From the NCBI GenBank assembly GCA_907165135.1, contig OU015569.1:9114001-9178000 (forward strand): 64,000 nt of DNA. Reading direction: 5' to 3'. Below the pieces are notes generated by a model. It had not been told where the DNA came from, did no database searches, and saw only the letters and a program-made list of their open reading frames with translations. Source of the stretch: Oikopleura dioica. Lineage: Eukaryota > Animalia > Chordata. Numbering within the stretch: the first letter of the stretch is position 1; each line of letters opens with the position of its first letter. This document shows, piece after piece, positions 4,785 to 58,802 of this stretch. The translations under genes were made by a program, and so were the position numbers.

Positions 4785-7700
4785 CTAACCAGGGACGCAA
4801 GCATATTCATCACATTCACTGTTTATGCCCGTGTAGTAGGTTTCGCAAGTTATCCGACATTCTTGTTTGGGTCCACAGTCGACGAATAGCTCGTACTTGT
4901 TTTGGCAGCTAACAGCCTCTGCATAAGCTTCGGAATCGTCTTGTGAAGCAGATTTGTCGTCAACCGTCTGTTTGGCTATTTTTTCAGTTGTACTTTTTCC
5001 CGGAGAAAATAAATGTTCTTCTATGTTTTCATCGACCTCTGGAAGGCATGAAGGAGCATCTGGACGTGCTAATACTTCTTCGTATAAGCTCACTAGAATG
5101 GGTATCGCTGTGAAATCTCCAGTTGAAACTTTCACTGATAATGTTGTGACTTGCTCAATATCATCGATAGATATATTTTTGCGGGTAAAATTGCAAAAGT
5201 GTTGCTCAAGCCAATCAACAAGTTCCCACTTTGACAAAAACACTTTTACTTCGTTGAAATCGATGCTTTCAGCATTCCCAAAGTTGCTATAGATATTGAA
5301 GAAGTCAGTAAACAGGCCAAATATATCCAGCGGAACGTTATTTTCCTGGACCATGTCTTCGCTGATTTCCGAAAAGTCGATTTCTTCGAGTATACACAAC
5401 CCTGCAGTGCATTGTTCAACGCAATCAATATCTTTTTCGCAGCTTCTTTCACATAAAAACTGGCTGCTATAGGATAAAAAATCGATAGAGCAATTAAAGA
5501 GGATTCTTATGATATAAACTTTATAATATAAAGCTTTGACTATACACAATGGTAATAGTTATTTTTATCCGATGGCCAAACTGTGCGCAAGGATTGAAAT
5601 CTGGAATACCTTCAGCCAAATTAGTGATGATTGTCTCGACCTTTGAAAATGATTCAAGGTCAAAGTTTTCATATTCGTATACTTCGTCCGTAGGGTTTCC
5701 TTCCAAAATATAATCTGTTGAATTTGCCATTGAATCTTGAGTATTTATATAGCAAGCAGTGTCGTTAGGACGTCTGAGAATATCATCATAAAAACTGCTG
5801 AGCTCACTTATAGCTGCAAAATCGCCTGTTGACACTTTCAAAGAGAGATTAGTTGCTCGCTCAACATCATCAAGTGTAATTCGCTTGCCAATATGATTAC
5901 AGAAATGCTCTTCGAGCCAGGCTCGGAGATCCCACTTGGTAATAAACGCTCGTATCCACTCGAAAGAAAAGTCAGTCAGGTTTTCGAATCTGCTAAAGAC
6001 TTCGTTTAGCTCCGTAAAGAGTGTGAATATTTCAACAGGGACTCGATTTTCTACTACGAGCTCTTCTGTAATATCTTCAAAGGCTTCGATTTCTCGAAGA
6101 GCACAAAGTCCATTGATGCAATCTTGAAAACATTGTTCTTCTCTCAGGCAACTTCGATCACATAAGAAGTGACCAAAGTTCTCACAGGGATCGAAATCCG
6201 GGATACCTTCTACCAAGGAAGAAATAATTTCGCCAATATCCGCAAATTTATCAAAATACCCAGGTTGGAAATATTCTTCATAGCCATTACCGGAATAATT
6301 GCCAGGTGCGCTAGAGCTGCTATCATTAAAATAACCGTAGTGAATAGAATCAGTCGCATTGTAAAGTTCATCGACGGAGGGGAGAATTTGGATAGGACTG
6401 ATACTGTCTGTTCGGTTACTTAGTTGAATTAGGGGCAAGAGAAGACCCTCAACAGTGGCTGTATCATTTGCCGACAAGTTCTCGAGCTAAGACAGGGATT
6501 TTCTGCGCCACATACGGTATGTGACATTTACATTAAAAATCCTGTTCCTGATCTAAAAGATTGAAAGCCTCGGTAATATCTGAGTCGTTGCTTATCGTCG
6601 TAATAAACTCAAATAATGACTGCAGATTTTCGGTGGCATTGTCTCTATCAGATACACTCTCAACGCCAGTTAAACATTCCTGAAATCAATTTAATGGAAT
6701 TCATAGTTAATAAATGCACCTCATAAGAAACACATTTGCCTTGATTATTTTGATATAGCCCGGCATTGCATTGACAGCCAGCGCTGCACTCCAATGTATA
6801 AAATTCTTCTTTCTGGAAATCTTCAGATATTAAACCGTCACAATACTTTTGCGTCTTTTTCGGGATATTTTGAAACGAGAGTTATTTTTGTTTCTTTATT
6901 AATATTTTCAAACACGTGGTAATTGCTATCCTCGCCTTGCATTCTGACCAAGACCTGTTCTCTTCGCAGACAGTGACTAAATTGGGAACACGATTACAGG
7001 ATTCCACAGGGACACACGTTCCATCAATATGTTGACGGACAAATCCTTCGTTGCAAAAACAACCTTCATTGCATCCAAAATTACAAATAACAGGATATTC
7101 GTTGAGGATCGAGTCACATGTATCCTCACAGTTTGTTCCACAAGTATTATAAGATGAATTTTCGGGACATTCGGGAGAGCTAAGTCGGCATTGGTCTGTT
7201 GGTGGCTTATAATCTCGAGAACATCTCATGATTTTTATAAAATTCAAGCCCACTCTTTAGGAATGCAGTTTTCATTCTCGTCCAGAACAAAGCCGTTGTC
7301 GCACTGGCAAGATGGATTGCAACCAAAATTACACATCAATGGATTCCCAGACAGATACGATTCACAAGTTTCGGGGCAGTTTGTTCCGCATTCGTTAAAA
7401 CTTGAGTATTTTGGACATTCAGGCGTGCTCCGTCTGCATTCATCTTCAATTGGTTTCAACCTCAAGATTAAATACAAGTTAAATTCTTGATTGAAACCAT
7501 TCCTTGCTTTATACAGTTGTTATTCTCGTCAAGAACAAAGCCTTGATCACATTGACACGATGGATTACAGCCGAAATTACACATAACTGGGAGACCAGAG
7601 AGAAAAGTATCGCACGTTTGCGGACAGTTTGTGCCACATTCATTGAAAGTCGAATTGGGCGGGCATTTTGGGTTCGTTTTGAAGCATAGATCTTTGATTA

Positions 7701-9094
7701 GGTCTTAATAAAAGGGAAGAACTAAAATACTCTCTTGAAATATAACCATGTCCTTTTTCAATGCATTCGCCATTTGAGTCCAAAACATAACCTTCAATAC
7801 ACTCGCAGGACGGATTGCAGCTCAGCGCGCATAAAACTGGAGCGCGAGAGGTTTCGCATGTCTCTGGACAATGAGAACCACACTCATTATAAACTGAGTT
7901 CATAGGACAATGAATACGTGGTTTGCAATTAAACTCAGAAATACAGATTCCATTTTCGTTGCGGACAAAACCGGCTCTGCACGTACATGCAGGCTCTGCG
8001 CATATTTTTGGGCATTCCATGAGTGGCTGTTCGCATGTTCCTTCGCACAAGTTGCCACATACATTCCAGAATTCATTCTTAGGGCACTCGGGCGACACAG
8101 TGATCGATTCCTTCTGACATGTCTCCGAACTGACACAATTTCCGAGATGGTTGCGAACGTAATTCTTTGCACAGGCGCATGCGTCCTCAGCGCAGATTCT
8201 CGAGCACTCCTTTTGGGGCTGCTCACAAGTTCCATCGCATAAATTCCCACACTCATTCCAAACCTCGTTTTCAGGACACTCTGGTTGCGCGATGATCTTT
8301 CTTGGACAGTACTGTGCCTCTAGACAGCGCCCAGTACTCAGATCTCGAAGGAGACCTCCTGAACATTGACATCGCTGATGGCATTGACGATCGCATAAAA
8401 GAGTTCAAAAATAACTGTTCTTACTAAAGAATACTGCAGGAATTATATTTACGGGGGCATGTTTTGAACTCCTTGTCAATAATATTCATGAGTTCCTTCG
8501 CAATTCGGCTCACAATCTTTATTAACAGCGCAGTAATTCCACTCTTCGCCTTTTGGACATCTGGAGACTGATGCTACACTCAAATTGAGTAGAACAGAAA
8601 TATAAGCTTCTCTCATTACGGACCGTAACTGAAGCGTCCAGCCGCGCTCTTCTGCGACCTACTTTTTTTCTTATCTGATACAAGAAGTAGACTCCTCCTC
8701 GCCTTGGGGCCAAATGGTGCATCCCTTATCTACACAGTGTGTAGTACACACTACGTAAGGAGTCGCCAGAGACGATTTTTCACCTTCTTTGGACGGGCAT
8801 TCCGAACGGAAGGGGAAGCATGTCTCCGAGAAATTTTCGATAATTGATTTTAGCAACGTTATCCGATGACTGCGTTCTTTCGCTTCTTAGAAATACGCAT
8901 TTCTATCAAATAGGTCCATAAAAAATTTTTAATATGGTTTGGAATTACGGAGTCATTGTGGTGAAAAGTAAAATTAGTTGTGAGTGAATTTAAGGTCTTC
9001 TCGCAACTTTCATGTTTTTTGGCCAAACAAAGCCTGCGAGGGCTGCGACGAAACCTTGCAAATAAATATTTGTAGGAGTTATATATTTATTCAT
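4785..9094 (-). CDS. Large secreted cysteine-rich protein with about 8 TIL (trypsin-inhibitor-like) repeats and two copies of an unrecognised ~160-aa C-terminal domain; candidate mucous-house/ECM protein
   Basis: Repeated CP.N..(W/F/Y)N.CG..C..TC......C...C...C.C..G(F/Y)V.D..G.C motifs in exons 6716-8575. The ORFs 5521-6477 and 4785-5549 share GIPDF.PC..FGHFLC.RSC...KVSTGDF.AI. The 5' end is approximate. Confidence 0.85.
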
Positions 9095-9323
9095 AACAAT
9101 AAAATGACGGAAGAGAAATAAAAGGCATTTCAGAGCTTGGTAAACGTCGCCTCCGGGCGATTGATTTATTCAGCTTACTCACAGACGGGCTCCCCATTTT
9201 ATATTTCTTTTTTCCTTTCTCTGAGTCAGTCTATTGAAGCAGCAAGTGTAGGCCTCTTCTCTTCACTACAATGAGCCTAACATACCAGTAGCCACTGAGC
9301 AGAGCTTTCAACTAATCCACAGC

Positions 9324-11391
9324 ATGGTCAACTTCAAGAAGACAGTGCGAAAATTATGCTTCTGTTGTGGAAAGAGAAAATATGAAACAAAATCACCAGA
9401 AGAAGACACTCGAGATTATGGAGGTAAGAGAAAACTTCTTTCAGCTATACTTTGAGACTTATAGGTAGTTTTTCTTACAAAATCAATCATCTTCAGAATC
9501 TTGTTAATATTTTTTATTTCTATTAAATTACCAATATGTATTTAATAATTATGAATAATAATTAGGAATTGCTGTTTCGGAATTTAATTCGCAGAAATAG
9601 GAGTTAGAATTTGATGAAAACGACGTTTGAATAGCCCAAGTTCACAATGAACTTTTTAAATAAGTGAGCGTTCCTAGGTGGAATCGAAAACGTCGCGTAT
9701 GAGAAGGAAAATACGTTAGAAGTGGCGAAGTCGCGCAATATTCCTGAGCAAAAACTGGCGAATGTGATTCAGACGCACGACTTTTTGGAGCACTACAAGG
9801 ATATGATTAGCTACGAAGATATAAGTCGAGAATACGAAGAACTGAAGAATTGTTTTCGAACTGAAGTCGTGAGTCGAGTAGCTCAACTGCCTGGAAACCG
9901 CGGCAAGAACAGATACATGAACGTCCTCGCAAATGAAGCTACCAGAGTGAAGCTGACTGGATCTTACATCAACGCAAATTACATCGAAATCAAGTCGCAA
10001 GCAAGGGACTATATTGCTACACAAGGTTAGTCACATTTTCAAGCACGTTCCGTCTCGAGTAACAAGAATTCAATCCTCGTGAAACATTTCTGGCCCTGTA
10101 AAAATTTTGTAATTCATTCTTTCGTGCGTAAAATTCAACGACTTTGATATGGAAACTCTGAAATTTATAATAGGACCGCTTCCTGGTACAAAAGCCGACT
10201 TCTGGAACATGATATGGGCAGAGAAATCCCTTGTTATTGTGATGCTCGTGCAGCTTGTTGAAAACGGCAGGATCAAATGTGATCAGTACTGGCCATTTGA
10301 CGAGAAGAAAGAAACCGTTTCCGATACCCTTGAAGTAGAGAAAACGGAGGAAAATATACTCCCGCTCTGGACGGAAAGGACATTTTATTTGTCAAATGGA
10401 ACAGACACACGTAAAATTCGCCATTATCAGTTCACGAGTTGGAGCTCTACTTCCGATACCCTGCCTAATATTGGGGATTTGGTGGCTTTTATAAAGCATG
10501 TGAGGTAATTTTTAACCAAGAGGATCGAACGTGCGTGATTTTAATTCTCAGAAAGTAAGAGCAAATTTACTTTTCGCTAAATAGGATAATTGATTCATTT
10601 TGAATCATATGAGTTCACATGCACTACGCGTATGTCGTATGAAGAGTGCATGATGTTATTCATAAATTACTTAATTTGATGATGTTGAGAATCTAGCATT
10701 TCGTGAGCGGTGCCTGGAATTAGATAAGTTGTCCTTGACCTTTTGGCGGCATTTATTACTCGAGTGTAAAGTTTATCTAGGTCAGATTTACCGTTGGAAG
10801 ATATTGGGCCGATGGTGGTCCATTGCTCTGATGGAAGCGCAAAAACCGGACTTTTCATTGCTCTTGACCAGATGCTGCGAGATCTAACAGAAGAAAGCTT
10901 CGTAAACGTCTTAGGAATGGTTTATCAAATGAAGAAGTGCCGCCAGAGCCTAATAAACTCAGAGGTAAACTCGATAATTAACGAGCATCTAGTAACGAGT
11001 TTAGTCCCAATATAAGCTGATATATGACTCTGTCCGTGACAGTTTGCTCGGAAAATTCGACGAAACAGACGCCATCTCAGATGGAATCAAGACGTCTCTT
11101 TCGGTTGAAAATCTGAACGAAGAAGAACCCCACAAACCGGTAGAACAAAGTCAAAATGAACAGTGGACTTATGACTTTTAAGTACGTGAATCCCGCACTT
11201 ATGGATGACAGTTCAAGCGATAGTTCCGGCTCACTCACAGATTCAGATGAGGAGCTGCCCACTATTCGACCAAATACAATGAAAGCGACAGTAAGATTAC
11301 TATTAGCTGATTAGACGTGACATCTTCATTCTAGGACATCGCAATCAACGACAATTCATCTTCCTCCGGCTCCGAGCCTTTCAATGACTAA
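9324..11391 (+). CDS. Single-domain classical protein tyrosine phosphatase-like protein, probably catalytically dead
   Basis: PTP motifs KNRY, YINANY, YIATQGPL..T..DFW.MIW and KC.QYWP are present. The P-loop reads HCSDGSAKTG. Exons are joined by GT-AG introns. Confidence 0.9.
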
Positions 11392-11890
11392 CACAAAAGA
11401 ATTTCCCAACATCCCGCCAAGTCTTCATAACTTTGTACTTACACAAACTCACCACTACTTACCTTTCAGTATCAGATACTTCCCTCGAGAGATTGTTAAG
11501 ACGCAGTATTTATTTCCCTTTATTCTTTTAAATAAATTAGTACTCGTCTCAGTTCTGACAACGAGTATTCACATTTCGAGAAAATAAGCACTTCAAGTCG
11601 AGTATTTTTGGTAGATATGTATTTGCAGGAATAATTGTAATTTTTAATAAAGTGCGAATCTTCGTGGTTTTATTCAGGTCTTCTTCGCGCCATCGCCTTT
11701 GCTGAAAGAAGGATTGTAAATCTTGAATTACGATGCTTTAAATTAATCTATATTTCTTTATGAAATTACCATCGAGATAACCATTTTTCGATTTTTTCAT
11801 CGCTTAATTGTATGTGCTCCTCAGTATTTGTTTCTGTGCTTTTCGCAGTCAAAAGATTTTCTTCTATGTCTTTTTTGTCTTTGCGATGTT

Positions 11891-12213
11891 TTATAAAAGC
11901 AGAATCGCACACATAGTCCCAAAAATAATAAAAAGAATGAAACACTCCTGAAATGGTTTGGGCGAGAATTTCTTTAGCTTTTTTCTGTTCTTCTTCTTCT
12001 TTTAATTTCTTGTCTACTAATCTATGAAATCAATGGATTAAGGATTCGCCTAAAAATGAGGACTTACTCTTCCCATCCGTCCAAATAAGGTATTATACCG
12101 AGTCTCTTTGCTTCATGCCGTTTTTTAGCAGTTCTCTGAAAGAGTTGCAGGACCCGTTCGACCTTCTCTTTTCTCGGATGAACTCTATGGAAATGCTTTC
12201 TCTCAGGCTTCAT
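11891..12213 (-). CDS. Small basic protein with C-terminal hydrophobic segment (tail-anchored candidate)
   Basis: MKPERKHFHRVHPRKEKVERVLQ...GWEE, a GT-AG intron, then LVDKKLKEEEQKKAKEILAQTISGVFHSFIIFGTMCAILLL*. Confidence 0.5.
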
Positions 12214-12970
12214 TGCCTGTAACTTCTATTTCAAAGTGAACTAATCTTTCAAAAAATTCAACAACATTCTACGTATTCTAGAATCTAAACCATCAAAATG
12301 AAAATGATGATAAAACTGGTGGTAAATTGCATGGATTAAATCATCGAAGTAAATTTCGAAAGCGAAAACGTAAGCTTCGACGTGTTTTTCTCAGGTCACA
12401 TTTCCGAACAACGCTTGAAATCAATAAATTCCGATTAACGTTATTTTGAACGTGGGGGGTGCACTCCAAGTGCCCCTGTTCAAGCTGGAAAGTTTTCTAA
12501 GAAACAACGTAAGGTAACCAGATTTCGCGAGCAGCTTGTCACGCTGGAACGCGAGGGGCGTCATCTGAAGCTTATCACCTAATTGTCAGCCTAAGATCGT
12601 TTAAAAGTATTGTAATTCGAAGATTGGCCTCCGCGCGGCTTTTTGTTAATTATAGCACATGTCAAATCAGAGTACTTAATGAAGAGGAGAGAAGCAACAA
12701 ATTTCAATCAGAGAGTAGCTATCAATTTCTTGGAATCTTGGTAAGCCACAAACAGAAGAAACAAAAGAAAAACATTTATGGGCGTACCCACTTTTTTGTG
12801 TCTAACTAATCTCATCATGTATTGGACAAAGGGGCGGAGAAACTGTCTCATGAATCCTAAGCATTTCCGCCAGTATTAATTATGGAGGGAAATCAAAGAA
12901 GAGAAGTTCTGACTTGTTTCTAGATTCAGCTTTGGTCAATCATTTGCGTAGAGATTCACAATAAAGCTTT

Positions 12971-14410
12971 ATGTCCCACACGACACCTTTTATATACGAC
13001 TTTATCGCCGGTTATTTTGGTGGGCACGTAGGGATCGTTAGAAACTTCTTTTACAATAGCTGATTCCATTATGCAACAGTTTCGATCCCAATCCAAGTGT
13101 CTGTGGCGTTATCGTTGGACATCCGTTCGACACAGTTAAAATCCGACTACAAACGCGTGGTCATTTGTACAAATCGGGAAGGGTTTTTCAGTCCATCTTC
13201 TTTCTATAAAATGGCATTCACGATGAAAAACCAGATGATTGGGTGTTGATGCCTGCCGAGCAATTATAAAGAGCGAGGGCTCACGTGCACTTTTTAAAGG
13301 CGTTATTCCACCATGCGTCGGTGTTGGTGCCATCAACGCAATCATTTTCGGCGTCGAGGGCGAAGGTATGCGCTATCTTCAAGAGGAGACTCCCATCAAC
13401 CACATGATCGCAGGTATATTGTCAAAGTAAACCTTCCAAATACTGTGATTCAAGGGACAATTGCCGGCGGTGTTCAGTGTCTGGTTACTGGACCAATGGA
13501 ACTTGTAAAGACGCAAATGCAGGTGACTGGAATCGGGGACGCGTCTGTGAAGCCTTCCCTGTTGAATACAGCGCGCGAGATCTACAGAAACGACGGGCTT
13601 AAGTAATTAAAAAATATATGTCCTATAGCCGGATTTAAACCTTCCCGTCATCGTTGAATGGGCGGGATTATCAAAATTTCTTTTATTCCAAAGAAGAAGA
13701 GATAAAGGCCAAGTTAATTTCTATTGCTTAGAATCGCCTCTTATGAATAAATTGATGCGGGACTTTTATTGCTAAAATAAGTTCTGAGATTGTGTTTGCG
13801 TTTCTTGCATAAATTTATTCACGCCGATATCTCATTCAGCGAGATATCTATAAATATTTCATTTAATATGACTATGAATTTATAAACCCTTCTTTATGAA
13901 AATATTAAGAGGGTTCGGACGAGGTCTTGGGACAACATTGTGCCGCGAGCTTCCTGCCTTTGCCTGCTACTTCGGCAGTTACGACGCCCTCCTCAAAATC
14001 ACCAATTATAGCCCTTCAGATGACCATGCTACGGCAAAGGTACATTTCCAATCTCGTTATGACCCTCCCACGCTTCGCCTGGAGTAATCTTTTCGAGTAA
14101 TTCCTTCTGAATTTATTTAATATCAACCGTAAAAAATGAAGTTTAGATTCTCGTCTCTGGCGGTCTAGCTGGCGTTAACTCTTGGGTTCTGACGTATCCA
14201 GTTGACCAAGTCAAGTCCAAGTTACAGGCCGATCAAACAAACCGTTTCTCCGGGCCAAGTGACTGCATAAAACAGACGATGCTAGAAGAAGGCATCCGTG
14301 GTTTTTATCGAGGAATTTCTACCGCAGTAGTGCGCGCCTTCGTCGTCAATGCGGCTACCTTCGGCGGCGTTAACTACATGATGAACATTTTGCTGAGCCA
14401 AACGTCTTGA
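12971..14410 (+). CDS. Mitochondrial carrier (SLC25), basic amino acid/carnitine carrier subgroup (SLC25A29/45/48-like)
   Basis: Three carrier repeats with the PX[DE]XX[KR] signature: GHPFDTVKIRLQ, GPMELVKTQMQ, YPVDQVKSKLQ. Also RELPAFACYFGSY and AVVRAFVVNAATF. Confidence 0.9.
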
Positions 14411-14879
14411 CCTTTTGATCCTGTACACTCGTTGCCTGTATATCTCGATTATGTAAATACAGTATTTTATCTAGTATAAAGGAAGACATCAAGAATCACG
14501 ATTTGAGAGCAGATTTTTCCTCCACAAACGTATAATCGTACCTTTATTTCATTTCAAGCCTAAAAACTCAAATTATTTCTTTTTATTTAGAAACTATCAT
14601 TTGAGTTATTTTAATTTACATTTTCATATAACCCTTTTGGTACTAGAAACTGCATATTTATAGCTAAAAACATCGAGAAATCTGGAGCATAAAAAATAAG
14701 GGGTCAAGGCCTGTGCTAAGTTTGGGAGAAAAGTCTACTACGATTATTGATTTTTCACAGATCTACTACTTAAAAATTATGACATATTATATGTGTACCA
14801 CAAAAAGTGGCGGCATTAGTAAAGTGATTCGAGAGCAAGGCCTTCTTTTCGTTGCATAATATCTTGGTCAGTTTATTAC

Positions 14880-16179
14880 AAGGACTGTGCCAAAGTCCGC
14901 CTCCACTTGCAGAGAGTGCACGCATGCGCCCTCGCGTGACGGTGTTCTAATCGCTGAACATACGCTAATGGTATCGAAAAAAGGAAAAAGACAGTTCTTT
15001 CTAATTTACTGACGCTGAAGTGAAACTCCCTGCCTTTGACATCATAAAAGAGTTCCTTTATCAAGATTACATTTTTTTTTCTAAAACGCTTTAACAAGCA
15101 AGAGTTAAATTCGAGAAGAGACTTCTTCAAGAGACAACCGAATGGACTTATGGTTGACTAAAAGAAGAAAAACTTATAGAGATTAAATCCAGAGCTGCTC
15201 TACTTGTACGATCACGTGGAACTAGACGGGCCGCCGATCTAGAGAGAAAAAGTTTTCAAAGGGGCTCTTGACAAATTCAAGGTACTGTTGCTAGAAAAAC
15301 ACTTTTGTCGATATATAGTGTGCAGGCATGATATTTTTAGTAATAGGATTATATGCGCAGTGGTTTCAAGGGGACTCTTAAATGGTAGTTCACCGATGCG
15401 TATTGATTTTCGAAGTTAGCAACTCGCCATAGGTTGAAATACATTTCTCACTAACTGGAGCGGGTCCAGTTTCGGACAGCGGTTTCGTTGAAAATATGCC
15501 GCTCATTCACTTTGTTATGACTAGAGTTAAGGAACATGGAAGCCATGCTCAGTTGCAATGAAAAATAGACTCAGTAAGCAACCCGAATTGTTGGAAAGTA
15601 ATAATAGTTACAGGCAAGGGAGAACAAGACTGTTTAGACGGAGTATTTCAAGTCCCCGTGGAATGGCCCAAAGTGGCGGCCAATTTAGAAACGAAGAGTT
15701 CCGCGTTCGTTCCCGTCCAAATCGAGCCGGAAATGGCGACCGTCAAATTCCAAACAGGTGGATCCCATCAAATTGATAGTAATGGACGTTCTGGCTATAG
15801 ACCTCAATTCCTGCCGGACAGGGTGCCCGATCTCACAAAAGATATTGCCGACGTCGTCTGTGGCCTTGATACTGACGGAGTTCTTATTGGTCTGGCGGGA
15901 ATAAAAAGCCTCCTCGTCGTTCCACTTCTTGTACTAGGTGTTGTCATCATAAGGTAAGGTCACGACCACGTGTCATTTAGCATCAGTGTCCATATTCATA
16001 TGTCACTCGCCCGTATAAGGACAGATACAGCTATCAAGCGGGCACAAATCGGGTTATACTGGAGCGCAAGTTATAACATTTACTCCCTATCGTATGAGCC
16101 CAAAGAACATAGGATCAACCGAAACTATCCGTTCCTCGGCAGCGCTTCGGCCTCTGAGTTTCATTTTTCGAAAGAATAA
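14880..16179 (+). CDS. Hypothetical multi-exon single-pass membrane protein
   Basis: Open exon ~15570-15953 ending in a hydrophobic stretch (VLIGLAGIKSLLVVPLLVLGVVII), spliced GT-AG in frame to a terminal exon ending at 16179. Upstream exons are tentative. Confidence 0.4.
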
Positions 16180-16565
16180 CTTTGTGCCATAAATATTTAA
16201 TATCCCGCTTTTTCTACATATTTTGGATAAAAATCGAAAATGGCACTGCATGTTTTTTAGTAAATCGATTTCAATTTTCTAACAGTTATCAAATTTCAGT
16301 TTTTTCTAACTAATCCTGTTGTTTTACATAATGATTTATGACTTCGAGTTTCAATTCGGAGTCCAAATTTTTGATTTTTCTTCCGTTGAAATATAATAAG
16401 GGTATCGCTTTGTGAATTTTTCTAATAAAAAACCTCCCATTGCTGATGTCTAATCACTTAATGATGATTGTTGAGGACATAATTAGTAACCGATCGATAC
16501 TTAGTCTTAGAATTCAGGAAGATGAATTACCAAATAGGCTTTAATTTTAGCTATATCACTTCTAA

Positions 16566-19500
16566 ATGTTTAATAGCCAAGATCAATCCATCGAAGACGG
16601 CTCGGGTATGAGTTCAACTGCGGACTCCTCGTCTGAACCTTCGTCCAATCTTAGAAGGTACCTCGGCATTTTTTTCTCAAAAAATCAGCGCATTCAGTTA
16701 CGTTGTTTCGTTCATTTCTGGCCTTACGATGGCAGTCTCGGCTGCCGTTGACTTTATTTTATTTCGACAACGTGACTCGTCCAGAATACTTGCATACACT
16801 TCATCCTCAGGTATGTCCGCAGTATATTGCCTCGTTATTTGTCAATATCGCTTGTGAGTAGACACAATATGCTCAATAAATTAGCGCTTCTAATAATTGC
16901 TCTGTCGTCTTATAATATCTAGCTATGTTTGAGCAGACTGGGCGAAGAGTCTCAGCTACTCTGGCCCTCATTGCAGGCGTAACGATGATCTCCTCGTAGA
17001 TCTTGCCGCCATCAACCTAATTGGTGCACCTTGTTCAATTAAGTCTGCCTCTGTTCCATTTTAATTTTTAATATCGATCAGAACTGTCTTTTAACGGGAA
17101 ATTTCGTGAATACGAGTTATTTCTTCTGTCGAGACAGAGTCGCTCTGGCCTAGCAGCAGGTAGAAATGGCGACATATTAATTTCGTGCGTGTATATTTAA
17201 CCATGCAAAGTAAAAGTCGATTTCGCCTAGCGCAAAGTCGTACATAAATGTATCGAGTAAAAACTTCTTTCAGCGTTCACCTTTGTGGCCGATATTATTT
17301 GCATTGATTATGTTCGAACTGTTATTACATCTGCGAAAGACGACACGCAGAAGCCACTTTACATCACTTGTATGACGATCACCATTCTTGGAGCAGTTCT
17401 TGCCGTGGTAAGCGAGCTTAGTACTCAACCAACACTCTCCTGTTGATAAAATAGCTACAGTATCAGTTCGATTAATTTTTAAATCTAATTGTTAATGTTT
17501 AATTTGAAATTCAAGGACGTTACCGTTGCTTTTCTAAAATGGCGGAGATAAAAAATGCATTCCGAATATTTTAACTTTTAAACACTAACGCCGCGCGTGG
17601 CTGGGGACGCCCAAATACTGACAGATGAATTTTTGATTTTCTTCGTCCGCTGTCGAAAAACTACCTAGCTCTGTCACCTCAAAAATTAAGATCACCACTC
17701 GCTTTGATACATCGATTGACATAGGAAATAACTCCACGAATTTGCAAAGACCGGGAGCGTGGGTCCAGCTCGAACAAGGGCTAATGCTGATCAATCACTG
17801 CCTTTGAATTCCAGAACGGGAACGTCACAGTATCTCATGCGCTTATTCGCAACCAGTTCAGATAATCGCGTGGCATTTGGCCGCCAAATCAAAAATAAAT
17901 CCCAGTTTCAATTAAACCGAAATTAATTAGAAACCTCACTACTTGAGAGTAATCGCATATGAGCTCTCCGCGAATTTTGGCGTAATTAGCTACACATCGT
18001 TGATTGCGCACGTAAATGAAACTATCTCTCAAAATGAAGATAGAAGTCAGTTCCAGATTTATTTCCTTTTAATCATGAGTCGTATATTCTGTTGATGAAA
18101 GTTTCAAAATGAGATTCAGGTTTCAATGTATGTTGGCGCTAGAATGGCAGCCTTAGAGGAGAAACGACTGATGACCGAAAGAGGAGGTGAACTACGAGGA
18201 AATCATACTTGAAATTTAATAATTCATTTAAAGGTCGACTGGCTGTCCTCAAAAAGAAACGTGAAATTATCGCCATGAAGAAACTCAGCAGGCTAATGCA
18301 AGATCAACGATTCGGGTGACTTTTCGAGGGGCTCGGATGGAGTCTCAATAAATTCGTTTTATAGTGATCACGTTGGCCAGGATCCAGAAGGATTGCCTGT
18401 TTCTCTTCATGGCGAGGACGATGGTCAAGATAGGGAAGGCAACCATTTCCAGGGAAAGTGTCAAGATAGTATATGCGCCTTTACATCATTAATGACTTGC
18501 TCTTATATTCAAGATTGCAAGAAGCGCTTCCTATCTCGACACCGATCGCTAGAGTGGTCATGACTCAAGGGCAAAGAAATCCGACATACCTTGGGGTGGA
18601 TGAGGACCTCTCTCGTTCTGTATAACACAAGCCTTACTCTTTCACCAATCGACCCTGATCCGACAGTCTAACCCAGCAAACGCGCCATACACTGTTTCTT
18701 ACACATTCGACATTGTGTAAGGAGCAAAGTCTTTTGATTAAATTGTTTTCTTAAAAATGAATAACCTGCCTTGAAACCCTATGAGCTATTATCCAGCAGA
18801 TAAAAAAAACCTTCACCGGACTAAAACCTGCTGATACTCTTGATACCCCTAGTTCGGACAACGCGGAAGGGAGCAAAACCGTTACAGATCAAAACTGAAT
18901 GGGCTCAACGGTAATGAGCTCGTGAGATCCCCGTCGTGTTGTTATATTACAGTATATTACGGTTGCCTTGTCCACTTCTGGTGCATTCTGTAACTCATGT
19001 AAAATACCTGCGTGTCTGCACAATATCTAACTTATTCTCTGACAAAACAACGCGGATAAATTGCGATCCTCAGCATGTCAATAAATCCAAAACTCACAAG
19101 GTAAAATAAAATTCTTTGGACTTGCTTTGATTTCAAATAATCAGATTTTATTCTGTTCAAAATAAAGAGTTAAAATTCTATATCAGGTCGTAAGCTTGTG
19201 TTCCAGAGCGCTCTTCGCTAGCGTAAATGTGAATAGCGTGTTTCACAAATGTTGACTTGCTCTTTCTTTGATAGATCGAGTAAGTGGGGGGAACACCCGT
19301 TTGGATGCTCCTTCGCCGACTCTCTCCGCTTCTGCGGCTCTCGTCATGACGCCATCGAGTTACACCCGACGACGACGCGACTTGTTGACTCCCTCGCCAG
19401 GCGGGGCGTTGCGCAAAATCTCAGTTACATTTTCTAAAACAATAAATTTTGAATATAAGTTTGATAGTAATTATATGAAGAGTTAAAATTCTATATCAGA

Positions 19501-24955: not shown

Positions 24956-24977
24956 CGACTGATGAGTTCTGTAGACT

Positions 24978-39962: not shown

Positions 39963-39983
39963 CAATACAATGAATACGCGAGA

Positions 39984-47516: not shown

Positions 47517-49580
47517 TTATTCCCAAATTTTGACGGTGCCATCTGCTGCTGAAGACACGAGCAGCTCTCCAAGTGGATCAAACTGAACGCAGTTTACAGA
47601 GGTCTCGTGGTCTCGCAGTTGAACCCTGAATAAAAGAAGTGAATATAGGAATATACCGGAAGAGTAAACAAACCGTTTCATAGTTTCGAATTCGACGATC
47701 TCGATCACGCCATTATCCAAGCCAACAGCTATAATCTCTTGTCCAATGTCCCACGACGTGGAATGACCCTCGCAGCCCAAGCTTATCTCATGCTCTACTT
47801 GAATCATTCGTACGTCCCAGATCAACAACTAAAATGTATTTAGAATTTTGCTGAGCGCACAAGAAACTCCTAGTCAACTAATTTGAATACCTTTCCGCTG
47901 CAGTCGACAGATGCGATTTTATTTCCACCGGGCGAGAAAGTTGCGTGATTGATTGGACTTGTGTGTGCAAGGAAGTTCTGGTGACAGAGACCTGTTCGAG
48001 CGTCCCATAATCTCATACTCTTGTCGGTTGAAGCAGTAAGAAGCGCGTTAGAACCGTAGACAAATTCACAGCTCATCACAGCGCGGTTATGGCCTCTGAG
48101 GGTGTTCCTGCATCGCTGCGATCCCAAATCCCAGATCTTGGCCGTATTATCCATTGAACAAGAAGCGATGAACTGACCACAAGTATGCCAAGCGACAGAC
48201 CAAGTTCCTTGAGTATGGTCGTCAAAGTCAGCCACACACGCTTCTTTCTCTAAGTTCCAAAGTCGAACGCTACGGTCACCACTAGAAGTCGCGAGATATT
48301 CACCATCCGGAGAGAATTTGGCGCAACTGACCCAGTCCGAGTGTCCAGAACCGGCGAGTAGACAGTCGCCAGTGGCCATGTCGACAACCTGCCAAGTGTG
48401 ATCATCCGAGGCCGTACAGATTTTGTGCTTGTTTGGGTGAATATCTACCCAGGCGACAGGCATCTGGTGACAGACGTGCGTCTGCGAGACACGAATAGAA
48501 CTCATCTTAGTGGACATGGACGATTTCACAAGACATGTGGTTGATTCCATTAGAGGATTGATACGTCTATCTGTGGGGAAAACCGAGTCCCGAAGGGCAG
48601 CAGGACCTTCATGTGCTGTTCCCGACGAAACAGATGGTGTGTTTGTGTCCGCTCTTGGAGAGAGTTTGGGCGATGACGGGTCGATTTCAGATGTTTTTGT
48701 AACAGTTGGGCGGAACACACGATCCTCAGATCCATCCATAGATTCCTTCTCATTTATTGGCATTGCTGAGAGTATTCCAACCAGTCGGTCACGTTCAAGT
48801 GTGATGAGCATTTTCTCCTTCATGGCTGTTTGGTATTTGGCTTGTAGTTTACTAAATAGTGAGCTAGCGGGGCGTCCAGATATCAAAAGGTCACCTCAAT
48901 TCCTCGGGATAATTAGCGTAGTGAGTTTTCGTGACTTTCAGATCATGTATAAACTTCGACTTTTCTTGTTCCAAACGGCTGTGGTGCATTTTATGATAGT
49001 CTTTTTCTTTTCGTAATTTTGAGAATAAAGGTTTCAATTCATCGATCTGAGATTTGACAATTTCGAATTGAAAGATGAACTACTCTTACCTGGTTTTCTA
49101 GTTGTGACTTTTCGTGTCTTAGCCTCGCTAATTGATCAAGCATGAGTTGATTTTCCAAGTAAACGGATCTAACCTTCTCCCGGTCGCCGCGCTTTATGAT
49201 GCCCTTTTGCTCCTTTTCGAACCATTCAGCTTGGAACTTGGCCAGTGTTTTCATGAAACCCATTTTGGCGAAGTAGTTTCGGATGAAGTCATCTATGGTT
49301 TCAGGCTGGGGACCAAGATGCTCAAACTTCAAGTCGTAGGCTCGTTGTTCGCGCGCTCTGTCATCAGCCATTTTCTCGTCCGCAAGTCGCTGTACATGAT
49401 ATAGATCTCCTGAGTAACGCATTCAGAACAAGACATTCAGAAATCTTTCTTACCGTCGCCGGGAATATCTTTTGATGGGATGACTGGTGGAAGAGGAGAG
49501 AGCGTCGCCCGGGAGCTACACTCACTCATCGCGAGCTCCTCGAGCATGTACTTCCCCTCGACTTCTAGCGTCTCATTCAT
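47517..49580 (-). CDS. SPAG16: Sperm-associated antigen 16 (PF20-like WD40 central-pair protein)
   Basis: PETIDDFIRNYFAKMGFMKTL..FQAEW, DYHKMHH.RL.QEK, KEKML..LERDR, then seven WD40 repeats. Confidence 0.9.
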
Positions 49581-49931: not shown

Positions 49932-51701
49932 TTAAAAGAAAGAATCCGATTCTGGAAATTGCTGGTCCCAAACGTTAAAATGTTGGTACATTTCAAAGGT
50001 GGTGCTATTCGCCTGAACACAGCTACTAGTTGAGTTTTTCGACGGTGAAAGGTCAGTGATCAGTTGCTCCATCGAAATAACTGTACCAACGACCATTCCC
50101 ATTACGCCGAAACTGCATATCACTAATAATTGCTCAATTTTAGCTTAAGCTAACTGCTAATTCTTCATCAAAAATAAATCTATTTTGATTCTAGAAGAGA
50201 CTCGTGAGCGTTACTTACGGGCGTTTTTCGCGAGGATGAGCACGTATTTCCATTTTCGCAGAGGCTGATTATGATGCAGAATTACACTGTCTATCAAAGG
50301 CGGGAGAATCAAGGCGAGCATAGAAGAAGCAAGTGCGCCAACTAAAGAGATGATGTCCCCCAAATCTGGAATAGCGATCGCAAGAGCGCCGGTGAGCCCG
50401 ACCAGCATGTAGCGAAAGAAAAGCTCATTTCGAACAGGATGTGCTGGATAGGTAATATTTGAATATGAAAGGAGCTTCAGGCAGTTACCTGTTCTCGAGC
50501 AGAATTTATCTTTAAATGCCGGCCAGAGGAACGTAATAGGTACGTAGAATTGAACCGCGAAGCTGATAAAGATGACGCATGAATAAAGGATCTTCGTCGC
50601 AGCATAAAGATCTCCCTCTGGAAGATTTAGTGTCACTGAGCCACAAATCGTGTCCCCAAATGTGCGGTAGCCTTAATCTCCGTAAAGCGAGTTGAGTTAT
50701 TCTCGAGCCTTACCTAAAACACCCATGGTAACGTAAAGCGCTGTGACAAAGAACATTCCAATGTTAAGAATCATTGGAAAGTCTTCAGGCTTGTCGATGT
50801 TATTTTCAAGGGGTAGGACAACGGAGATCCCTTCGAACGAAAAGCAGGCTGCGCCGAAGAAGAGGGCAAAGTTCTTGAAGGATTGGACTTTAGGAAACTG
50901 GGACGTATCTTGAGCGTGTGGAATCAAGTACGAGAAGATGAAGGCAACCGAAATCCCAGTTGCCAAATTCGCCACGGCGGAGAAGGGAGCTAGATGATCC
51001 AAATTTCTAATTGAGCAAAGAGCGCAAAAAGGAACGACCAGTATTGCCATTATCGCTCGCTGCGAGTTGTGCGGATCATCCGTGAGCATTTTCGCGAATG
51101 AGGAGCTTTCATCGAGGTACTCAACCATAACTTCGTAGATATTCGCTGCAATGAAGACGAAGTAGGCACAGCAGAACCCGAACTGCGTCACGATGATAAA
51201 CAGATTCACAATTTTCGAGCCAAGCTCGGCATGTTTCCTAAACCAAGGCGAGCCGTAGTACTAGAAAAATAAAGTAAATTCAAAGAGGTTATCCGGAGTT
51301 AGTACCTCGAGCGTCGCTGTACCCACTTCGCCGTAATCTAAGTTCGAGCAGCCCGTGATCGGACAGAGATGTTGCGACGCCTTCACCAACAGGTGCATGC
51401 AGTGAGTAGCCATCAAGGCCATGAGAAGGAGCATAATAGGCCCAAGGACCCATCCGCCATGGTAAATAGCGAGCGGCAGCGCCAGCAACCCCGTGCCAAC
51501 ATTTCCTTAGATTGACAAATAAACATAAGCATTTCCTATTCGAGCATACCCTTGAAAAGATGCATCAACGTTTCCAGCCTCGTCGTCGTGTGTTCATTGG
51601 CCTCTCTTGATGTCAAAAATGAGCTTTCCGGTGTATTATTGAGCATCTGTTGAGTCGACGCAGTCAAATCGTCATCTCCCGATCCTGCCGTCCGATTCAT
51701 T
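49932..51701 (-). CDS. Proton-coupled amino acid transporter (SLC36/PAT family)
   Basis: ETLMHLFKGNVGTGLLALP, TQFGFCCAYFVF, FFGAACFSFEGISVVLPLEN, FISFAVQFYVP, SLVGALASSMLALILPP. Confidence 0.92.
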
Positions 51702-54524: not shown

Positions 54525-54807
54525 TTGCCTTTATCTCTCTTCCGTTCACGAAATTTGAAGGGGACAGTACAATCCAGCCAATCAACAAGTCCGGGAATCT
54601 AGAAAGCCAAAAAAGTAACGAAAATCCATCTCGCGAACTCTAACAAGACTAAAGTTTACGTTTCCTTTCGCAGAACACCGGAACAAAATGTAACGGCATC
54701 TTATGTTTTCATGTTTATTATTTTATAATATTGGTTATTTTAATTAGTGCATTCTCGAGTAAGTATAACTGTAAATCATATTATTTAACTTCTGGGCACT
54801 GATCAGC

Positions 54808-54879
54808 GGTCTTATGGTGTAACGGTTAGCACTCTGGACTCTGAATCCAGCGATCCGAGTTCAAATCTCGGTAGGACCT
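54808..54879 (+). tRNA. tRNA-Gln (anticodon CTG)
   Basis: 72-nt cloverleaf with acceptor stem GGTCTTA/TAGGACC, anticodon arm CTGGA-CTCTGAA-TCCAG and T-loop GTTCAAATC, followed by a T5 terminator. Confidence 0.97.
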
Positions 54880-54934
54880 CTCTTTTTGCATTTTGTTTTC
54901 GCGACCGGAAGTGCGGAAAAAGGTTGAAAAAGAG

Positions 54935-55006
54935 AGGTCCTACCGAGATTTGAACTCGGATCGCTGGATTCAGAGTCCAGAGTGCTAACCGTTACACCAT
55001 AAGACC
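54935..55006 (-). tRNA. tRNA-Gln (anticodon CTG), identical inverted copy
   Basis: Exact reverse complement of 54808-54879, with its own T5 terminator. Confidence 0.97.
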
Positions 55007-55329
55007 GTTGAGAGAAGATCAAAATTTTATTTATATATTAAATAATTTAAACTTAAATCAAAATATTGTTAATAATCTGAATCTAAAAAGAGCACAGCTG
55101 AGAATTTCGCTCGCTGGAGAAAAGTAGCTCTATAAAAATATGGACTTTAAATTTTCAAAGCTTCAGTAAATCAAATGTAGAATCATGGTATTTCTTCGAG
55201 ACGTAAAAGAAGAGCTGACTTTGAGACAATAAGAAGATCTTACCTGTAGTGACAGTGGCTCGAATTTTCGAGTCGAGCTCCTATGTCGAGATTCATGAAA
55301 TTTTGGTATTTTGAAATTTTGGTTATATA

Positions 55330-56339
55330 GAAACGACAGCAAAGAAGACGGCTTTGCCAACATCGTTAAGCAACAAACGGAATTCGTACATTATGTACTC
55401 TCTCAGGATCAAATGACCAGGAAACTGAGTAGGGATCATCATTGTCTTCTTCGATATTTTTTCGGAGCGAGAAAATTTGACTGGGAAATTTTTTATTTTG
55501 AAAATTGCTTTTTTTCGGTATATCAACTTCTGAGTAACTGATTGTCTGATGAAAATTTATGGCCACGTAGCTTTTCAGTCTTGTACAGAGAGAGCCCTTA
55601 GATTCTCATATGGGATGAATGTGCTCTTGGAATGCGACTCATCAGCTTGATGATAGGATCATTATTATAATCTGCTGTTGGGCCCTCTAGACGAAAAGTC
55701 TGTCAGAAAATGCAATAGCCAAATATAATATTTTATAATAATTTATTGAATATGATTGTGCTTTTCTGGCAGACTATGAATTATTACTTTTGCGTAATTT
55801 ATTAATATAAGAATAAATCAAAATTGACAAATTTTGAATAGTAACTCGCAGAATAGAGAAACTCCCAATTTATTGACAACAGCAGTGCGAAGCTCCCCAT
55901 AAAAGTTTTTCGAGAAGAGATATTCAATCTTGCGACCACCAATATCGACTCATTAGAAGTTGGCCAATGTTAAAATCGAAATATGTCGTTTGAGTCTGGA
56001 TAAGAGATTAGATCCAAATTGACGAGGATGAGATTCATACTTTTTTCCCTGTTAAACTTCTGCTTTCTCGGAGTCGACTCAGAATCAATCGGTTAGTTGG
56101 ACCTTCTCTTCCTTGATTTCAAACAAAGGTCTTCAGAAAAAGCAAGAATAAGAAGAATGCTTGAAGACAGATTGAGACCACGAAGAAGAGAATCGACTTA
56201 TCAAGTTAATACGAAGCGCAAAACGAAAAGAAGCTTTGATAAGATTATAGGCTAACGATGTTTTTTTTAAAACCTTGAGTAGCTTTAACCTAAACCTTGA
56301 GCTGAAGCCTTGAAGCAGCGATCGTCCGAGATTCTCCAT
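55330..56339 (-). CDS. Hypothetical multi-exon protein
   Basis: ORF 56339-56133 plus downstream open stretches such as VDIGGRKIEYLFSKNFYGELRTAVVNKLG. The model was not resolved. Confidence 0.35.
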
Positions 56340-56676
56340 CGTTCTCCTCGTAAGTGATAGATTTGCTTTTATTTCGCGTCACGTTTTTACATAGAACTCG
56401 TACTGTACAGTGCACACCGTTGGAATAGAAAAGGCCTCATTAGAGGAGAGAGACATTACATTTATTTTTTGTTTTCTAACTGGCCGTGCATTATTAATTT
56501 TTACAGATAGGCCATTTTACTGTTACGTGGTTTGAGATCAAAGCGATGAAAATCAATGCTTAAGCATTCGGGCGCGATCATTTTTTAATAATTCTGATAA
56601 CAGATTTTACGCGATCAGCGCTCCAAAAACATCAACCTTTGGGATTCAATTAAATAAGCTTTTTTTCAGAGAAGAA

Positions 56677-58802
56677 ATGCGTTTTTGCTTTTTCTTTCTT
56701 AGTTGCTGTAGACTCGCATTTGCGTTGTCCATAAATACGACAGAGGTGCAAGAGTCGCTAAAGATTGAAGAAAAAACTATCAGAGACCTAAAAAGTAAGG
56801 GTGTTGGAAAATTAATGCGACTTCGTGGACGCTTGACAGACCAAGACAGAATAAACAAATTACTAAGTAATTATCATACTTTCCGGTGTTTCTTTTCGTC
56901 TTTGAAAATGACATTGATTTTAGTACTGAACATAAATTAGGTTAAATATGAAGCATTTTATATTTAACATTCCCATGTGTTTTGATAAAATATGAGCTTG
57001 GATGAGAACTGCTTTAACTCTATGTGATTGCAGGTAAAATGGACAAGAGAATTCGGCCATTCGAAGATATCGCACCTTTGAATGTATCTATCAACCTTTT
57101 CATATCCTCTTTCGACTCTATCGCCGAAACAACGATGGACTTTGGGCTCACATTTATCATGAGGTTAGCAAAGATAGTTATGCATCGCTGTCTAAGTATA
57201 TTTTCAGGCTTCGCTGGCAGGATCCGCGGATGATGTTCCCCGACATTACCAACGAGAAGACTTACAACAACCGGACAATCTTGACCATGGACTTGAAATT
57301 TCTGGACGAGCTCTGGGTTCCTGGTTAGCATTAACAAAACGCTGTTTCTAAAGTATCTTTAGACGTCTTCTTCGCGAATGAAAAGTCAGCGAATGTGCAC
57401 CAGATAACATCGGATAATAAACGGCTTCGCATTGACTCGGCGGGCTACATTTATCTAGAGATGCGTTTATCAGCCACTTTATCTTGCCATATGCGATTCG
57501 AGCATTTCCCGATGGACGTTCAGGTGCTTTCACGTTTTAGCCCAGCACTGGTCTTCTCTAACCGTGAAGTTAGGTCTGTGCGATCGAGATCGAGTCTTTT
57601 GCATACGATACAGCTGACGTCAATTTCGACTGGGACTCCACTCCCGGAGGAGTCGAACTTGCACGTTCAATCGAATTGCCCCAATTCAAATTACAAGGTA
57701 GACTAAAACTTGGTTATTTCGTTATGAAGATGAATGAATTTTGAGGCCATGTTCTTGGTAAATGCGACAGTCCACGAGGAAATTTCACGTGTATAGAAGG
57801 AAAATTTATTCTTTCTCGTCAGATGGGCTACTATCTTATCCAGGTGCACTATGATATCAAATATATATATTTTTTAATTTTTTTTCTCGTTTTGGAAAAC
57901 TTTTTGTTCCTTCTGACAGTTAGAAAATAGAAGAATATCGTTTATTGTTTCAAGTTTGAACTGAGAGTTTATTCCTAGGCTTATGTGCCAACGACGCTGA
58001 TCGTGATGCTGAGCTGGATTAGCTTTTGGATTTCGATCAATGCGACTCCCGCACGTGTCTCGGGCCGTGGTTGCTCAGATTCCAAAGCCATAAATTACCA
58101 TTTCTCGGGCAGAAATTATGGCCTCCATGACCGTGATAACGTGTCAATTTATTCGCGAAACTGAATGGAGCGCGAGTCTATCGCTATGCTTATTAGCGGC
58201 AAATTAAGACGCTTAGAGATATTGAGCCGGAGGATTAGTTTGCTAACCGGATCAACTTGAGTGAGCACTTCGTCTAAGCTAGGAATTACGACTGTTCTCA
58301 CCATCACTTCCCAAAGAAGCGCACTTACAGACAGGGATGCGAATCTATTCGTGAAAGTTTTATTTTATTCAAAAACTGTAGAAATAGATAGTTTTCCATC
58401 TCTTCATTCAGCCGCACTGCCGATGGTTTCTTATGTCATGGCCATTGATATATGGGTCCGGTTCCAAATGAATAAATTATTTTCGCCGATTCAAAAGGAA
58501 AAAAACAACGCATCGGACCCTTTTAAAAGATGTCACTTTGCATGGCTTATGTTTTCGCCGCAGTGGTCGAGTATGCGATTGCTAACTTCATCGACAAACC
58601 TGATATTGATCGACTGGCTAGGAGAGCGTTCCCCTCCACATTTGCGGTCGTCTGGTCAGTTTTATCTTTGTTTTCCTTCTTTTTCATTTTCAGCTCTTTC
58701 TATTACGCGTACTATGCCGTCTGCGTGAACGAACTTCCCGGCCTGAGCGAGCAGATGACCCGTTGGGTCGGCGACGAACGAATGCGAAAGCTCAAACCAT
58801 GA
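56677..58802 (+). CDS. Cys-loop ligand-gated anion channel, glycine-receptor-alpha-like
   Basis: Signal peptide, WVPDVFFANEK, Cys-loop LSCHMRFEHFPMDVQVC, RQMGYYLIQ, LSWISFWI, PARVSLGITTVLT (anion-selective PAR motif), LPMVSYVMAIDIW, VFAAVVEYA. Confidence 0.92.

Follow-up and report, generated by a model that had tools for sequence, protein, structure and literature searches.

How are the ends of an intron found when it lacks the usual GT at its start or AG at its end? About one in nine introns of the larvacean Oikopleura dioica break the GT-AG rule, and their mode of recognition has been an open question since 2010, the year in which Denoeud et al. (in Science) reportedly described the G*-AG non-canonical introns of this species. 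The question is raised by a 64-kb stretch of chromosome XSR of O. dioica OKI2018_I69 (100% identical to OU015569.1 of GCA_907165135.1 where compared, over positions 1-19197 in reverse orientation; hereafter 'the window'), which contains genuine introns with non-consensus ends that are removed at the RNA level. Here, we report that the two ends of many of these introns are joined by a short terminal helix, that this pairing is stronger than in the GT-AG introns of the genes examined, and that the paired ends are conserved between diverged lineages while the loops between them are not. On balance, we propose that the helix aids spliceosomal recognition of introns with weak sites and that it probably derives from transposon ends.

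Intron set and controls

In the paper describing the assembly, non-GT/AG introns amount to 11-12% and the median intron is 49 bp long, and the gene models were produced by AUGUSTUS with RNA-seq hints (PMC8008620). We curated introns by hand from open frames, family motifs, and splice-site position weight matrices (PWMs), because a codon-usage Viterbi finder fused the window into one gene and a greedy PWM scan yielded many false long introns. The 13 curated genes encode fibrillarin, a proteasome beta subunit, a WD40 protein, SLC36, SLC35B, a mitochondrial carrier, a tyrosine phosphatase, a Cys-loop receptor, DNAL1, a prefoldin, a GNAT acetyltransferase, a TIL protein, and a G protein-coupled receptor (GPCR). 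The resulting set comprises 43 GT-AG and 11 non-canonical introns. Ten of the latter had been listed in a preliminary description of this sequence; the eleventh (6855-6935, GC-AG), which that list missed, was taken from an annotated protein.

Stems were compared with those of 500 dinucleotide shuffles of each intron interior, and the end duplex was computed between the first and the last 31 nt at most. As a further control, the 5' end of one intron was paired with the 3' end of another of the same class.

Pairing of intron ends

All the stems that the preliminary description had listed were found in the sequence. Its claim that most non-GT introns are end-paired stood for six of the ten introns, those at 5464-5569, 6487-6547, 7444-7502, 8395-8477, 13024-13097, and 13177-13241, in which the longest perfect stem has a p value of 0.004-0.036 against the shuffles. 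Pairing is at chance level in three others (7692-7752, 37088-37528, and 58063-58278) and marginal in 58334-58411; 7692-7752 had been described as having no clear stem, and indeed none was detected.

As predicted, the non-canonical introns of the curated genes pair more strongly than the GT-AG introns when both are measured against shuffles: the median z is -1.8 for the former and 0.0 for the latter (Mann-Whitney p 3.5e-4), and the median end-duplex energies are -14.3 and -5.8 kcal/mol, respectively (n=11 vs 43). When the ends of different non-canonical introns are crossed, the median rises from -14.3 to -8.85 kcal/mol (Mann-Whitney p 3.7e-4), and stems of at least 7 bp are found in 5 of 110 crossed pairings vs 6 of 11 own ones. 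Own and crossed pairings are alike among the 43 GT-AG introns (p 0.14). The two classes also differ in length, all non-canonical introns being at least 59 nt long and 32 of the 43 GT-AG introns at most 50 nt, but end pairing still differs when the comparison is limited to the 11 GT-AG introns of at least 55 nt (p 0.0075). A typical intron of the hairpin class measures 59-106 nt vs 40-50 nt for ordinary introns here.

The helix is 7-13 bp long, with a 5' arm that starts at -1 to +7 and a 3' arm that ends 3-9 nt before the junction, and minimum free energy (MFE) folds close the ends of six of the eight introns tested. Perfect inverted repeats of at least 9 bp bracket four introns (5464-5569, 7444-7502, 8395-8477, and 13177-13241). 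Such repeats, with spacers of 10-450 nt, are not in excess in the window as a whole (144, vs 129 +/- 12 in local Markov shuffles); the oddity lies in their position at intron ends, not in their number. Scanning short hairpins for further sites that would join open reading frames (ORFs) gave no clear additional intron.

Some individual GT-AG introns are end-paired as well: 58456-58529 (+) has a stem of 7 bp (-17 kcal/mol), and 10965-11004 (+) has one of 8 bp, GUAAACUCG / CGAGUUUAG, which is lost in L005, a contig of a diverged lineage introduced below. The GT-AG intron of SLC36 that had been credited with a stem at about 50655-50696 was placed at 50672-50713 (-), where the pairing falls short of significance (p 0.054). 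In the WD40 gene, a 9-bp inverted repeat at 49032-49073 (-) links a GT-AG intron of 43 nt (49047-49089), which holds one arm, to the next exon, which holds the other. Two further GT-AG introns are tiny, one of 29 nt at 7225-7253 (-), which is annotated, and one of 31 nt at 48864-48894 (-) in the WD40 gene, which we place by inference.

Junctions and removal from RNA

The most direct evidence of removal comes from the mitochondrial carrier gene. Its first hairpin intron, 13024-13097 (+), is a GC-AG intron of 74 nt with 7-bp arms at 13031-13037 and 13083-13089 (GGGATCG / CGATCCC), and a joint that skips these 74 nt (13023/4-13096/7) occurs in all three RNA runs, in 3, 9, and 18 reads. The second, 13177-13241 (+), is 65 nt long, with arms at 13182-13190 and 13224-13232; reads with loose ends lead from 13177/13178 into sequence encoding LDAFRAIMR, which is exon 3 of contigs L004 and L005. 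Read mapping, which the preliminary description had proposed, thus confirmed the skip of 13024-13097 and supported the join at 13177. The reads (90-95% alike to the window) and the metagenome DNA contigs L004/L005 have in common a diverged O. dioica lineage, here called lineage B; we treat them as one lineage because the loose-end read sequence matches exon 3 of L004/L005 exactly. In lineage B, both carrier introns are present in DNA (L004, L005, and L007-L010) and missing from RNA.

Neither carrier intron is conventional at its borders. Lineage-B DNA has CC at the start of 13024-13097, so that this intron reads CC..AG or GC..AA, and it is this CC-starting form that the reads show spliced. For 13177-13241, an AG acceptor is excluded by an in-frame TGA at 13236-13238, and the possible placements are GG..TT, GG..TG, GA..GG, and AA..GG, that is, neither GT nor AG; in the MFE fold, the last bases of the exon also pair with the last bases of the intron in an outer helix of 5 bp. 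A second intron of this kind is 8395-8477 (-) of the TIL gene, 83 nt long, which cannot end in AG because no AG occurs from the stop of the downstream frame to the Cys codon. Its placements are TG..TA, GA..AT, and AC..TG, and its helix (8398-8410 / 8462-8474) counts 13 bp including one G.U, with perfect arms at 8401-8410 and 8462-8471 (stem p 0.004). The preliminary description, which gave GA-AT for 8395-8477 and named no ends for 13177-13241, is corrected on this point: neither intron can end in AG.

The official gene models avoid both AG-less introns, and the models in the window are wrong at these places. That of the TIL gene (CAG5098779.1; 4638-8660, -) uses another first exon, with loss of the first half-domain, and also loses 34 aa of the second C-terminal repeat; that of the carrier (13368-14410, +) has 195 aa, starts at 13368, and misses the first three exons.

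Elsewhere, the annotation agrees with non-consensus junctions. The annotated TIL protein, Oidioi.mRNA.OKI2018_I69.XSR.g15968 (CAG5098779.1), uses the GA-AG junctions of three introns on the minus strand. One is 6487-6547 (61 nt), with arms at 6491-6501 and 6535-6544 forming 10 bp with a 1-nt bulge (duplex energy -17.8 kcal/mol, z -3.4). Another is 7444-7502 (59 nt), in which the hairpin spans nearly the whole intron, with arms at 7451-7459 and 7491-7499 plus 6 inner bp (-17.4 kcal/mol, z -3.9). The third, 7692-7752 (61 nt), is a paralogue of 7444-7502 from which the hairpin is gone. The exon map of the same protein gives 6855-6935 (-), a GC-AG intron of 81 nt with junctions AAG/GCG (5') and AAG/ACG (3'); it has a 5-bp stem, GGATA / TATCC, with 2 bp past a bulge, and is found in L002 and absent from L012/L013.

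The TIL orthologue ORFs of L003, L012/L013, and L014 lack most of the introns and are gap-free over the junctions of 8395-8477, 7692-7752, 7444-7502, 6855-6935, and 6487-6547. L003 is recorded as a metagenome DNA scaffold, and L012/L013 contain a single GT-AG intron as well as intergenic DNA; the uninterrupted ORF of L014, of 1050 aa, could be DNA or cDNA. For introns covered neither by the reads nor by the three annotated GA-AG junctions, these ORFs are the support for removal. The site of 8395-8477 is read through without a gap in both L003, as DNA, and L012.

Annotation and hairpin disagree at 5464-5569 (-), a GA-AG intron of 106 nt with a perfect 9-bp stem (arms 5472-5480 / 5562-5570, GGATAAAAA / TTTTTATCC; p 0.006). 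Here, the annotation prefers a GT-AG intron of 208 nt, which deletes a motif conserved in the gene's internal repeat. The disputed codons show synonymous changes only in L001 and L002, including CAG>CAA in two extra codons, and the lineage-B ORF aligns over the junction except for an additional 2 aa. From these comparisons of sequence, the GA-AG placement is taken as correct over the annotated one.

Three of the listed introns are less well placed. In the Cys-loop receptor gene, 58334-58411 (+) is a probable in-frame GG-AG intron of 78 nt, positioned by the spacing of the M2-M3 loop only, with a long hairpin (MFE -16.9 kcal/mol, z -1.6) closed by GGGAUG / CAUCUC with G.U pairs (duplex p 0.03, marginal). 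Upstream of it, 58063-58278 (+) is a possible GG-AG intron of 216 nt with a 6-bp stem at chance level (p 0.12), and an in-frame GT-AG alternative 6 nt upstream would cost two residues of the conserved ARVxLG motif. The possible GG-AG intron 37088-37528 (-), of 441 nt, lies in the GPCR gene, with NPLIY in the next exon; it has a stem p value of 0.9 and likewise an in-frame GT-AG alternative. These last two, both without a significant stem, may not be non-canonical at all, and the earlier list needs this qualification.

Overall, G*-AG ends are seen in 5464-5569, 6487-6547, 6855-6935, 7444-7502, 7692-7752, 13024-13097, and 58334-58411, and are not found in 8395-8477, 13177-13241, or the lineage-B copy of 13024-13097. 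Canonical introns nested within the hairpin introns were considered and rejected, as the flanks left over carry stops or break the frame.

Conservation between lineages

The ends of the non-canonical introns are 0.67-1.0 identical between lineages and the loops 0.5-0.6. The clearest case is 13177-13241, of which the first 14 and last 18 nt (32/32) are identical in L004, L005, and L007-L010; between the window and lineage B, its loop of about 33 nt is unalignable, and the flanking exons are 79% identical (exon divergence being about 10-20%). In 13024-13097, the same comparison finds both arms kept, along with 16 of the 17 nt at the 5' end, and changes in the loop and in the 5 nt that separate the 3' arm from AAG. 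For the GT-AG introns 10965-11004, 11140-11182, 13414-13454, and 14040-14146 on the same contigs, identity is 0.40-0.47 over the first 15 nt and 0.27-0.60 over the last 15 nt.

Two introns of the TIL gene can be followed in L001 and L002. In 5464-5569, the GA donor and invariant arms are present in both, all changes in the flanking codons are synonymous, and the interior is 53% identical in L002. In L001, 6487-6547 has an A>G substitution in its 5' arm that shifts the bulge and keeps 10 bp; pairing is weaker in L002. Compensatory substitutions, which the preliminary description had proposed as a check, were looked for among the lineages, and none was seen.

Conserved non-coding sequence also occurs outside these introns. 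Three blocks (14840-15040, 17470-17640, and 13603-13700) are about 95-100% identical to L005 amid diverged surroundings. The second ends in AATTTTTGA, which resembles an Sm site, and the third is the start of a GT-AG intron of 307 nt; no Rfam family reached its gathering score in any of the three.

A shared motif and the origin of the introns

The arm sequences had been described as unrelated to each other, and this did not quite hold: a GGAT/ATCC core recurs. GGAT lies within the first 16 nt of 5 of the 11 non-canonical introns vs 1 of the 43 GT-AG introns, ATCC within the last 22 nt of 5 of 11 vs 0 of 43, and both together in 4 of 11 vs 0 of 43; three other non-canonical introns have GGTTT(T)CA / TGA(A)AACC-like arms in common. 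The recurrence hints at related intron ends, and the GGAT...ATCC core resembles hAT-type ends. The motif YAGGGAT, which is typical of hAT ends, is present at three non-canonical intron ends, and its 12 occurrences in the window, vs 10.2 expected, are no enrichment; a pair at 2760/2814 lies where no coding region is recognisable. A pair of the CAGAGTT type, which the arms of 8395-8477 resemble, was found nowhere else in the window. Terminal inverted repeats (TIRs) of 7-13 bp, a feature of transposon-derived introns, are found at the ends of 6-7 of the 11 introns.

Presence and absence bear on the same point. The TIL gene (window 4638-9885 compared) has 9-10 introns in the window, one in L012/L013 of lineage B, and none in L014, and seven of its introns are absent from L003 and L012-L014; both introns of the carrier gene are common to the window and lineage B. 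Relative to lineage B and to the gene's paralogous repeat, the mRNA is longer by 6 nt, in frame, at 5464-5569, which is the kind of scar that an insertion would leave. Within the TIL gene, 7254-7752 (-) is a tandem duplication of a unit made of an intron and a TIL-domain exon, which in L012 (1740-1950) is a single unit with no intron. The homology of the two intron copies (7444-7502 and 7692-7752) is still recognisable, and the hairpin survives in 7444-7502 alone.

Recognition and origin weighed

Our favoured reading, held with modest confidence, is that the helix aids spliceosomal recognition of weak-site introns and probably derives from transposon ends. The helix and a few outer nucleotides would be part of what is recognised; the helix would hold two weak junctions together for the U2-type spliceosome, the only one that this animal has, and would be kept by selection for that role. 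More weakly, the helices may have begun as the TIRs of small hAT-like DNA-transposon insertions, and the introns would hence be introner-like gains that have since turned into unique sequence. A conserved terminal helix offers a concrete hypothesis that is testable in a chordate that is kept in the laboratory, has a short generation time, and yields embryos suited to injection. If true, it would connect three subjects so far kept apart: introns of transposon origin in Fritillaria and some protists, introns defined by structure in euglenids, and the recently described SOS splicing, triggered by hairpins, in animals.

Both parts of this reading had been raised in the preliminary description, and each stands in part. 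That stems juxtapose weak sites fits the conservation of ends and not of loops, and does not fit the stemless 7692-7752 or the missing compensatory change. That the introns are relics of miniature inverted-repeat transposable elements (MITEs) fits their absence from sister orthologues, the 6-nt scar, the strand-symmetric arms, and the GGAT...ATCC core, and does not fit the findings on copies and duplications given next.

Several observations weigh against the favoured reading. The sample is 11 introns in four genes of one 64-kb window, six of them in one gene; the RNA runs come from the other lineage and cover only two of the five introns in the read-mapped stretch. Whole-intron MFE z-scores are modest (-2.2 to +1.3), the signal being the terminal helix and not the total energy. 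Sense and antisense strands pair equally, with no G.U-specific asymmetry; the stems are therefore in essence Watson-Crick, as expected of inverted repeats at the DNA level. The stem of 6855-6935 is weak. GA-AG introns do not strictly need one, given that the paralogue 7692-7752, though stemless, is annotated as spliced all the same. The arms of the compared lineages show no clean compensatory double change, and conservation could therefore be on sequence rather than on pairing. As to origin, blastn-short found no second copy of any non-canonical intron in the window, and no target-site duplication is consistent: direct repeats at the junctions measure 0-4 nt, the usual AG/G overlap included, and the nucleotides outside the arms sum to 6-15 without a constant value (6855-6935 has AAGGCG / AAGACG). 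Moreover, one or two cDNA-mediated losses would fit the presence/absence pattern as well as eight gains, because GT-AG introns are missing in the sister lineage too (7225-7253, 4746-4789, and 9424-9677 of the phosphatase gene, the last absent in L012).

Several of these points recur in a first alternative, which we regard as unlikely: that the introns arose by palindromic or TIR-bearing insertions, or by fold-back repair, and that the hairpins are neutral remains of these events, with no role in splicing and decaying with time. Relics of this kind would have plain Watson-Crick, strand-symmetric arms without covariation, as found; 7692-7752 would be an instance of decay, having lost its stem and kept its annotated splicing, unlike its paralogue 7444-7502, and in L005 the GT-AG intron 10965-11004 has lost its 8-bp stem. 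Decay is not what the best conserved ends suggest, however, given that 32 of 32 end nucleotides of 13177-13241 are identical beside an unalignable loop and exons that differ by 10-20%, that both arms of 13024-13097 are invariant, and that those of 5464-5569 are invariant in L002 around an interior of 53% identity.

At the other extreme, the introns may form a distinct, structure-defined class, in which a conserved helix of the GGAT/ATCC type, and not GT/AG, sets the cut sites, ends such as CC..AG or GG..TG are allowed, and removal falls either to a modified spliceosome or to a ligase pathway set off by hairpins and akin to SOS splicing. Such a class would have been seeded by hAT-like miniature transposons. 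We consider this improbable.

Less probable still is that RNA structure triggers the removal of some or all of the introns, chiefly those lacking GT or AG, by a pathway outside the spliceosome, either SOS-like (AKAP17A, CAAP1, RTCB) or euglenid-type. The proposal gains from 8395-8477 and 13177-13241, which have neither GT nor AG, and from 13024-13097, which begins with CC in lineage B and is removed nonetheless. In SOS splicing, whose junctions are seldom GU-AG, the pairing of inverted terminal repeats (ITRs) triggers excision and is necessary and sufficient for it in cells of worm and human (PMC12779559). However, SOS splicing is imprecise and multi-site, acts on the long ITRs of recent insertions, and needs AKAP17A, CAAP1, and RTCB (PMC12779559), whereas here the reading frames demand precise removal, the ends are evolutionarily fixed, and the stems, at 7-13 bp, are much shorter than transposon ITRs; multiple imprecise junctions were not found for 13024-13097, which has a single joint in 30 reads. 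Additionally, most of the introns keep a 5' G, a 3' AG, and GNAAG-like donors, as recognition by U1 and U6 predicts.

The euglenid variant of this proposal meets a similar mixture. The nonconventional introns of euglenids likewise have non-canonical borders that vary, and their ends are drawn together by a helix that begins a few nucleotides in from each (PMC3935182, PMC4770533, PMC11282704), with pairing between +4..+6 and -8..-6 (PMC11282704). They differ in having a CAG/CTG core at a fixed position and no polypyrimidine tract, and in being excised as circles after the conventional introns (PMC3935182, PMC4770533, PMC11282704). No such fixed pairing was found in the introns of the window, where the offsets vary (5' -1 to +7, 3' 3 to 9) and the core is GGAT/ATCC.

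Chance and ascertainment, that is, stems spotted by eye and A-rich 5' ends that pair with T-rich 3' ends by composition, might seem to be favoured by the lack of a window-wide excess of inverted repeats, by the three or four of ten listed stems at chance level, and by a small sample with six introns in one gene, but are a very improbable explanation, since crossing the non-canonical ends keeps composition and loses pairing (p 3.7e-4), the 43 GT-AG introns show nothing of the kind, and both the annotation and every intron of the 13 curated genes went into completing the set.

Comparison with known introns

The favoured reading, a helix that aids spliceosomal recognition and comes from transposon ends, can be set beside described systems. 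The nearest are the G*-AG introns of O. dioica itself, with which the introns of the window have in common the species, the assembly, GA/GC/GG donors with an AG acceptor, short length, and a U2-type spliceosome only; they differ in that two have no AG and one starts with CC in the sister lineage. The literature searched, the texts of Denoeud 2010 and Henriet 2019 excepted, contains no terminal helix, cryptic-species conservation of ends, or GGAT/ATCC core for O. dioica introns. Larvaceans have lost the U12 spliceosome, and U1 is present (PMC13326754).

In the larvacean Fritillaria borealis, as Henriet et al. 2019 is summarised in later papers, non-canonical introns derived from MITEs have TIRs and lineage-specific positions, whereas GT-AG introns occupy conserved positions (PMC11282704, PMC13326754). 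Those non-canonical introns, about 90% of the total, mostly have AG-AC/AG-AT ends, are flanked by target-site duplications, and follow an exonic TAC (PMC11282704, PMC13326754). The two animals share a larvacean background, a U2 spliceosome only, and non-canonical introns that end in TIRs; unlike in Fritillaria, the introns of the window have G*-AG or irregular ends, no consistent duplication, and no repeat family in the window, and make up about 15% of introns.

The introner elements of Amoebophrya have inverted repeats of 8-20 nt between their ends and direct repeats of 3-5 nt over the junctions (PMC7789003). The introns described here resemble them in being non-canonical, in having inverted repeats at the ends, and in a splice position that varies relative to the hairpin (PMC7789003). 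The differences are that those elements form repeated families in a dinoflagellate without U1, and that unique sequences and U1 are present here (PMC7789003, PMC13326754). Mirtrons are hairpins of about 22 bp that span the whole intron, with canonical splice sites; the stems in the window are 7-13 bp long, except in 7444-7502 and 58334-58411, and have no Rfam match, and the splice sites of these introns are non-canonical.

Structured RNA elsewhere in the window

An Rfam search of the window returned two tRNAs only. The two tRNA genes, at 54808-54879 (+) and 54935-55006 (-), are identical and lie within an 81-bp perfect inverted repeat at 54807-55007.

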